Source: Parasitella parasitica NRRL 2501 (lineage: Eukaryota; Fungi; Mucoromycota). Taken from it: DNA of 56,561 bases. The notes beneath the pieces are model-generated. The model was not told the DNA's origin. It worked only from the letters and a program-made list of their open reading frames with translations, and ran no database searches. A program made the translations under genes and the position numbers. Below are positions 6,848 to 7,867 of this stretch, in pieces; the first letter of the stretch is position 1; the number at the start of each line of letters is the position of its first letter. The stretch covers positions 1-56,561 of the forward strand of contig MU619337.1 in assembly GCA_025201805.1 (NCBI GenBank), given 5' to 3'.

Positions 6848-7657
6848 TTAGCGAGAGGTGGCAGCAGCTTTGGGAGCAAAGCCCTTGGCTTGTTGTTTGC
6901 TAACCTTGGGTTGAGCCTATTGCAATTCAAAGATTAGCAACAATCACTGAGATAGCAGCAAATAAATCTTTGTACGCATATACTTACAGTAGGATTAGCA
7001 GCCTTCTTAGCAGCAGCGGCAGCCTTCTTGGCATCCTTGGACTTGGAGATGGCAGCTTGACGAGCAGCAGCACGAGCATCAGGCTTTTGATTGCGCTTAG
7101 CACGGATAGCATCCCAAGAGGCACCAACAACAGCACGCTCGTGCTTGACAGTACGGCGAGAGCGTTTCTTTAGGATTTCCTCAGCCATTCCCTTCTTGTT
7201 CAAACGACGATAGATGACAGTCCATCTGATCTTACGAGGGTTCAAACGTTGGAGAAAGTAGGAGGCAGCCTTACCGTTAATAAAACGGAAAATCTAGCAA
7301 AGTGCATGTAAATATCTAATGTCCACAACTAAAGTTTCTCTCTTTCTCTCTTTCTCTCTTTCTCTCTTTCTCTCTTTAAGTTCCAAAATAAAAAATAATA
7401 AAAAAAAAACCAAACTTACTCTACATGAAGAATGAATTAGTATGGTCAAGTTCCTATAGAGCGTGTTCGATTAAAATCTACCTGCTATCGATACGGACGT
7501 AGGTCTTACCCTTGGCAGGGTAGATCTTGTGGCCAGAGAAAGAACAGATCTCAAGCCTATAAAAAAAACAAATTGGATGTTAGTGATCACATATACTGGA
7601 TGGATGGATGCAGGTATCATGTTGGGTGAGGATATGTTGGTATTTCATTTACTTCAT
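6848..7657 (-). CDS. RPL24: 60S ribosomal protein L24 (eL24); exons 7657-7653, 7556-7482, 7420, 7293-6988, 6916-6848
   Basis: Spliced product MKLEICSFSGHKIYPAKGKTYVRIDSRIFRFINGKAASYFLQRLNPRKIRWTVIYRRLNKKG...AATSR is typical eL24. Confidence 0.97.
7335..7377. repeat. (TTTCTCTC)x5 microsatellite in RPL24 intron 3
   Basis: Read directly from sequence; purine-rich (GAGAGAAA)n on the sense strand. Confidence 0.9.
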
Positions 7658-7867
7658 CTTGACTTATGGATGTATGGCGAAAGAGGAGGTATCAGGGGCG
7701 TCAGCCATTTACCTCTCTCTAGTACGTCTCCTGTCAGCCAAAGAAAAGTTGACTCTCCTTCCGGAACTGCACTGATACATGGACCGGACATGATTCTTAT
7801 CATGGCTTTTATCATGGCACTGGTTTTCACATTTTCCATCCATTCCCTCTTCTTGAACTTTATCATC

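Follow-up and report, generated by a model that had tools for sequence, protein, structure and literature searches.

The analysed window comprises the first 56,561 nucleotides of contig MU619337.1 of Parasitella parasitica NRRL 2501 (assembly GCA_025201805.1, 32.8 Mb in 450 contigs). On its minus strand, the region 7657-6848 holds a five-exon gene for the ribosomal protein eL24 (RPL24), the third exon of which, as inferred from sequence, is one nucleotide long. The parts of the gene were read as follows:

7653-7657 (minus strand), coding part of exon 1, ATGAA, i.e., Met plus the first two bases of Lys
7557-7652 (minus strand), intron 1, GTAAAT..TATAG, phase 2
7482-7556 (minus strand), exon 2, 75 nt, encoding LEICSFSGHKIYPAKGKTYVRIDS and ending with AG, the first two bases of Arg codon 27
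7421-7481 (minus strand), intron A, 61 nt, GTAGAT..CTAAT(16 nt)..CATGTAG, the lineage-specific upstream intron
7420 (minus strand), single-nucleotide exon, A, the third base of the Arg codon AGA
7294-7419 (minus strand), intron B, 126 nt, GTAAGT..GCTAG, at the ancestral phase-0 position
7335-7377 (minus strand), a perfect (GAGAGAAA)n microsatellite of 5.4 copies inside intron B
6988-7293 (minus strand), main exon, 306 nt, 102 codons (IFRFINGK..AANPT)
6917-6987 (minus strand), last intron, 71 nt, GTAAGT..AATAG
6848-6916 (minus strand), last coding exon including the TAA stop, encoding AQPKVSKQQAKGFAPKAAATSR*

Exon 2 ends ..GATAGCAG at 7482 (GAT AGC AG) and is followed by GTAGAT from 7481, an ACTAAT branch-like motif (CTAAT, branch A at 7437, 16 nt from the 3' splice site), CATGTAG ending at 7421, the lone A at 7420, GTAAGT at 7419-7414, GCTAG ending at 7294 and ATT TTC CGT from 7293. 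The earlier note, which had reported a one-base exon between introns of 61 and 126 nt, was correct in its observation at every coordinate. Its statements that direct joining of 7482 to 7293 shifts the frame and that the only other nearby acceptor it had checked runs into a stop were also confirmed: the direct join reaches a stop that ends at 7242, and the acceptor ..ACATTAG|ATATTT is in frame but reads through TAG. The note missed one canonical in-frame alternative, in which the donor TAC|GTCCGT at 7498 is joined to the acceptor at 7294 with the loss of VRIDSR.

The identity of the gene was established via Pfam and protein comparisons carried out exon by exon. The main exon scored 49.7 bits, the exon 2 piece 37.1 bits and the public 151-aa model KAI8638838.1 (P0001) 102 bits against Ribosomal_L24e (PF01246), all above the gathering cut-off of 27. 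A protein search gave 117 hits, all of them L24e, with the P. parasitica model KAI8638838.1, to which the main exon is 100% identical, as the top hit. Exon 2 covers the profile positions 4-26 and the main exon 28-66, so exactly one position, the split Arg codon, is left between them. The three exon pieces match KAI8638838.1 at residues 3-26, 28-129 and 130-151, the last two without a gap at the last intron, and residue 27 is R. The public model therefore already reads DSRIFRF and implies the extra base. The short first exon (ATGAA|GTAAAT, followed after the intron by G CTT GAG to give M K L E as in the model) and its phase-2 intron are conserved in every fungal eL24 locus read, including Glomus, Basidiobolus, Mortierellomycotina and Calcarisporiella. 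Two further motifs are conserved upstream of the ATG in the Mucorales eL24 copies, a pyrimidine-rich leader (CTCTTTC.GC.C.CCATAAG..) and, 100-150 nt upstream, a CCGG.CCGGA-like palindromic element (window ~7660-7790, minus strand; ~1020-1148 in locus L002; ~1010-1138 in L016, the Rhizopus delemar locus RO3G_06546; ~330-477 in L004, an intronless contig described below). They may be ribosomal-protein promoter or leader elements.

To see whether the gene can be spliced in any other way, every combination of one or two GT/GC-AG introns of at least 35 nt between the conserved peptides KIYP..DS and F[RK]F.. was enumerated. In the window no single intron keeps both peptides, and the only solution with the conserved two-residue spacing (R-I) is the 61 + 126 nt pair around the A. 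The other nine solutions insert extra residues through poor sites in the microsatellite and are not shared by the paralogues. The one-base-exon path is the only one shared by all ten Mucoromycotina loci examined, and in three of them (L006, L007 and L008, the last being R. delemar RO3G_08357) it is the only canonical solution at all.

The conservation of the arrangement in other Mucorales, which the note had named as a check, was then examined. The genome has three eL24 copies, and both other copies have the same layout, as do seven loci from Backusella circina, Rhizopus microsporus, R. delemar (two loci), Absidia repens, Lichtheimia ornata and Umbelopsis sp. In all ten loci the pattern is AG|GTA..YAG|A|GTAHGN..YAG, with the lone base always A. 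Intron B begins GTAAGT, GTATGT, GTACGT, GTAAGA or GTAAGC. Intron lengths range from 51 to 96 nt (A) and from 52 to 243 nt (B), and the intron interiors align about as poorly as unrelated AT-rich sequence would, whereas the main exons are 85-97% identical. An AGNGTR hexamer alone is not rare, 0.5 being expected by chance in this 188-nt stretch; what exceeds chance is the presence of the same AG|A|GT, at a frame-restoring place, in 10 of 10 loci with otherwise unconserved intron interiors. The two donors differ in a consistent way. Donor A never has G at +5 but always follows an exonic AG, whereas donor B follows a non-consensus A and always has G at +5. This fits the trade-off between the -1 and +5 positions of 5' splice sites and suggests that both donors are under selection as working sites.

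These data also bear on the possibility of an assembly error (a base lost at an exon edge) or a pseudogene, to which the fragmented assembly and the peculiarities of intron B in the window copy might point. The microsatellite makes this intron about twice as long as in the two paralogues (126 nt against 64 and 52 nt), and there is no strict YTRAY branch motif in its last 50 nt, the nearest candidate being TTTAC at 15 nt, whereas the branch motif is good in the paralogues. This copy might therefore be spliced less efficiently than the other two. However, the same layout is found in three paralogues of this genome and in seven loci from six other independently sequenced species, and the exons are intact, without stops, and 85-90% identical to the paralogues. 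We consider an artefact or a pseudogene highly improbable.

The use of the donor at 7498 deserved closer attention, since the path is canonical GT-AG and in frame and about 20 public models are built this way (..GKTY|TFRF.., e.g., those indexed here as P0006, P0020, P0125 and P0144). The residues that would be removed belong to the Pfam L24e domain and are conserved in all outgroups. The 17 nt before the donor of intron A evolve as codons in the ten loci, with synonymous third-position changes and Ser AGC to TCT/TCC switches, and are therefore coding. GTCCGT/GTTCGT is a poor donor, and the intronless Rhizopus contigs described below retain VRIDSR, whereas the ab initio models of the same lineage (P0020) delete it. 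Hence, this route is very unlikely as the main product. Of about 91 public Mucoromycotina-type eL24 models that include the start of the main exon, about 30 read the junction correctly and about 60 do not, which bears out the statement of the note that gene predictors miss such exons. The correct models are mostly named in the style of JGI submissions. The commonest error uses the Val-codon GT as the donor and deletes VRxDSR, whereas other models retain intron B or part of an intron, or begin in a shifted frame of exon 2.

Transcript-type evidence came from Rhizopus. A 151-aa JGI protein (P0139) is encoded without any intron on two contigs from different JGI samples (L004 and L005), which match the R. 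delemar RA 99-880 locus of RO3G_06546 (L016) at 99-100% in the exons; in the detailed comparison exon 2 was identical at 75/75 positions, and the remaining exons and the 3' UTR were 98-99% identical. The other R. delemar locus, RO3G_08357, was not the gene behind these contigs. All introns are absent, and exactly one extra A lies between ..GATTCTAG and ACCTTCC. The nature of the contigs is uncertain, since they share about 400 nt upstream of the ATG (L004 1-477, L005 1-416), including what looks like the 3' end of a neighbouring gene, and L004 also has an unrelated 3' tail after position 960. The 5' flank is only 85% identical to L016 over 89 nt and unrelated further upstream, which hints at gene conversion between Rhizopus eL24 paralogues or at a chimeric assembly. 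A BLAST search of the upstream parts against all retrieved loci found nothing. The contigs could be read-through or chimeric transcript assemblies, or a processed, cDNA-derived genomic copy; either way, it is inferred that they derive from a spliced mRNA. A scan of metagenomes with the main exon returned only one locus (L017), a Mortierella-like intronless contig that does not bear on the one-base exon.

The same comparison addresses a single non-canonical intron (GT..TA or TA..AG, shifted by one base), which would give AGG instead of AGA with no one-base exon. AGG would also encode Arg, so protein models such as KAI8638838.1 cannot tell the two routes apart. In the genomic locus L016, however, the base after the donor-side AG and the base before the main exon are both G, so that a shifted junction would give AGG, whereas the contigs read AGA. 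The A can only be the one flanked by TATAG and GTAAGT at L016 position 1325. The shifted junction would also need non-canonical splice sites in 10 of 10 loci while a perfect AG|A|GTAAGT is conserved inside. This alternative is likewise very improbable.

The ancestral state was sought in four outgroups, each of which has a single phase-0 intron directly after the Arg/Lys codon: Lunasporangiospora of the Mortierellomycotina (AGA|GTACGT), Glomus cerebriforme of the Glomeromycotina (AGG|GTTAGG), Basidiobolus (AAA|GTACTT) and Calcarisporiella (AAG|GTAAAA). Intron B sits at exactly that position, and intron A, one base upstream, is therefore the derived feature. It is shared by Mucorales and Umbelopsidales, which NCBI taxonomy places in separate classes of Mucoromycotina, and is absent from Calcarisporiella, which belongs to a separate phylum. 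In this view, the one-base exon arose in or before the common ancestor of the two orders and has been kept in every paralogue since. Two histories fit these data. Either a new intron was inserted between AG and A, next to an existing intron, or one exon-edge base was lost and the frame was rescued by an AG|A|GT inside the old intron, a scenario sketched for Fusarium by Nelson and Syed (PMC12940212).

Altogether, the main interpretation of the note, that a one-base exon between two introns is needed to read RPL24 in frame, is supported by the conservation in paralogues and orthologues, the enumeration of splice paths, the Pfam coverage and, with the reservation given above, the intronless Rhizopus contigs. 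We hold it with high confidence that this is a real, constitutive one-base exon, the A completing Arg codon 27 and restoring the conserved V-R-I-D-S-R-I-F-R-F. The sequence itself shows two complete canonical introns with one base between them, whereas the inclusion of that base in the Parasitella mRNA, the effect of the base on mRNA and frame, and the manner of splicing are inferred. The acceptor of A and the donor of B overlap the same few bases, so that, judged by the general size of the spliceosome, two spliceosomes could not sit there together and exon definition would be impossible. The introns would then be removed one after the other by intron definition, as in recursive splicing but with one base retained. 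The note had also inferred ordered splicing; stepwise removal is reasonable, but no fixed order is required by the sequence. Exon 2 and intron A both end in AG, so that donor B reads AGA|GTAAGT whether or not A has been removed, and acceptor A is followed by A in either case. The suggestion of the note that the arrangement is stwintron-like did not hold, because no splice signal is interrupted and a base is retained.

The note further raised the hypothesis that skipping of the A creates an NMD substrate and thus an autoregulatory switch. In such a model the lone A would be more than a frozen accident and could act as a splicing checkpoint for eL24 dosage, with competition between the inner sites (productive, including the A) and the outer sites (7481 and 7294, skipping it) tuned by eL24 itself or by growth signals, which would explain why every paralogue has kept the arrangement since before Mucorales and Umbelopsidales split. 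The predicted stop of the skipped product, ending at 7242, lies 254 nt upstream of the last exon junction, and splicing-coupled autoregulation occurs in other ribosomal proteins. However, no skipped isoform was seen among the sequences examined, which included no Parasitella RNA, no evidence for regulation was found, and there is no conserved sequence or structure in the introns beyond the splice signals. Retention is also explained by the difficulty of losing exactly one of two adjacent introns without a frameshift. The regulatory idea remains speculation and is, on present evidence, unlikely.

One-base exons are a rare but already described oddity; in the papers found they are reported in only three organisms, and full-text searches revealed no report for eL24 or for Mucorales. 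The present case stands out for its unusual age, its copy number (two or three copies per genome where paralogues were checked, in Parasitella and R. delemar) and its host gene. An abundant housekeeping mRNA with short introns, found across a whole fungal lineage that includes tractable species (Mucor, Rhizopus), is well suited to asking how the spliceosome handles adjacent 3' and 5' splice sites. With one intron in the outgroups and two in the ingroup, the origin of a one-base exon can be studied directly, and the annotation errors in about two thirds of public Mucoromycotina models of this universal marker protein can be corrected with a simple rule.

The Arabidopsis thaliana APC11 exon (Guo and Liu 2015, PMC4674806) is likewise a constitutive single A between canonical AG and GT, needed for the reading frame and mis-annotated in public records, and its authors also propose stepwise, intron-definition splicing. 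The eL24 case is fungal, lies in a highly expressed ribosomal protein gene present in several copies with short introns (51-243 nt), and is conserved across two orders, whereas rice APC11 has no intron; there is mutagenesis proof for APC11 and none for eL24. The one-nucleotide exon of Fusarium CYP621A (Nelson and Syed 2026, PMC12940212), presented by its authors as the second example and the first in a fungus, was inferred from a phase mismatch, conservation in orthologues and an intronless length marker, and then confirmed by transcript reads, with nearly all public models wrong. There the base is G (AG|G|GT), the middle base of a Gly codon, in a rarely expressed P450 of one genus, whereas here it is A, the third base of an Arg codon, in a housekeeping gene across Mucorales and Umbelopsidales, and the ancestral single-intron state can be seen in outgroups. 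The long-read annotation of Coprinopsis cinerea with 13 exons of 1 nt (PMC12230235) shows that one-base exons occur repeatedly in fungi once full-length transcripts are used; it is a genome-wide count, and in the parts consulted no gene is named and neither conservation nor eL24 is mentioned. In zero-nucleotide recursive splice sites (ratchet points) and stwintrons, a 3' and a 5' splice site also sit next to each other inside what looks like one long intron, and removal takes two steps. A ratchet point, however, retains no base and its donor exists only after the first step, and the inner intron of a stwintron interrupts a splice signal of the outer one, whereas in eL24 one base needed for the frame is kept and both introns are complete on their own.
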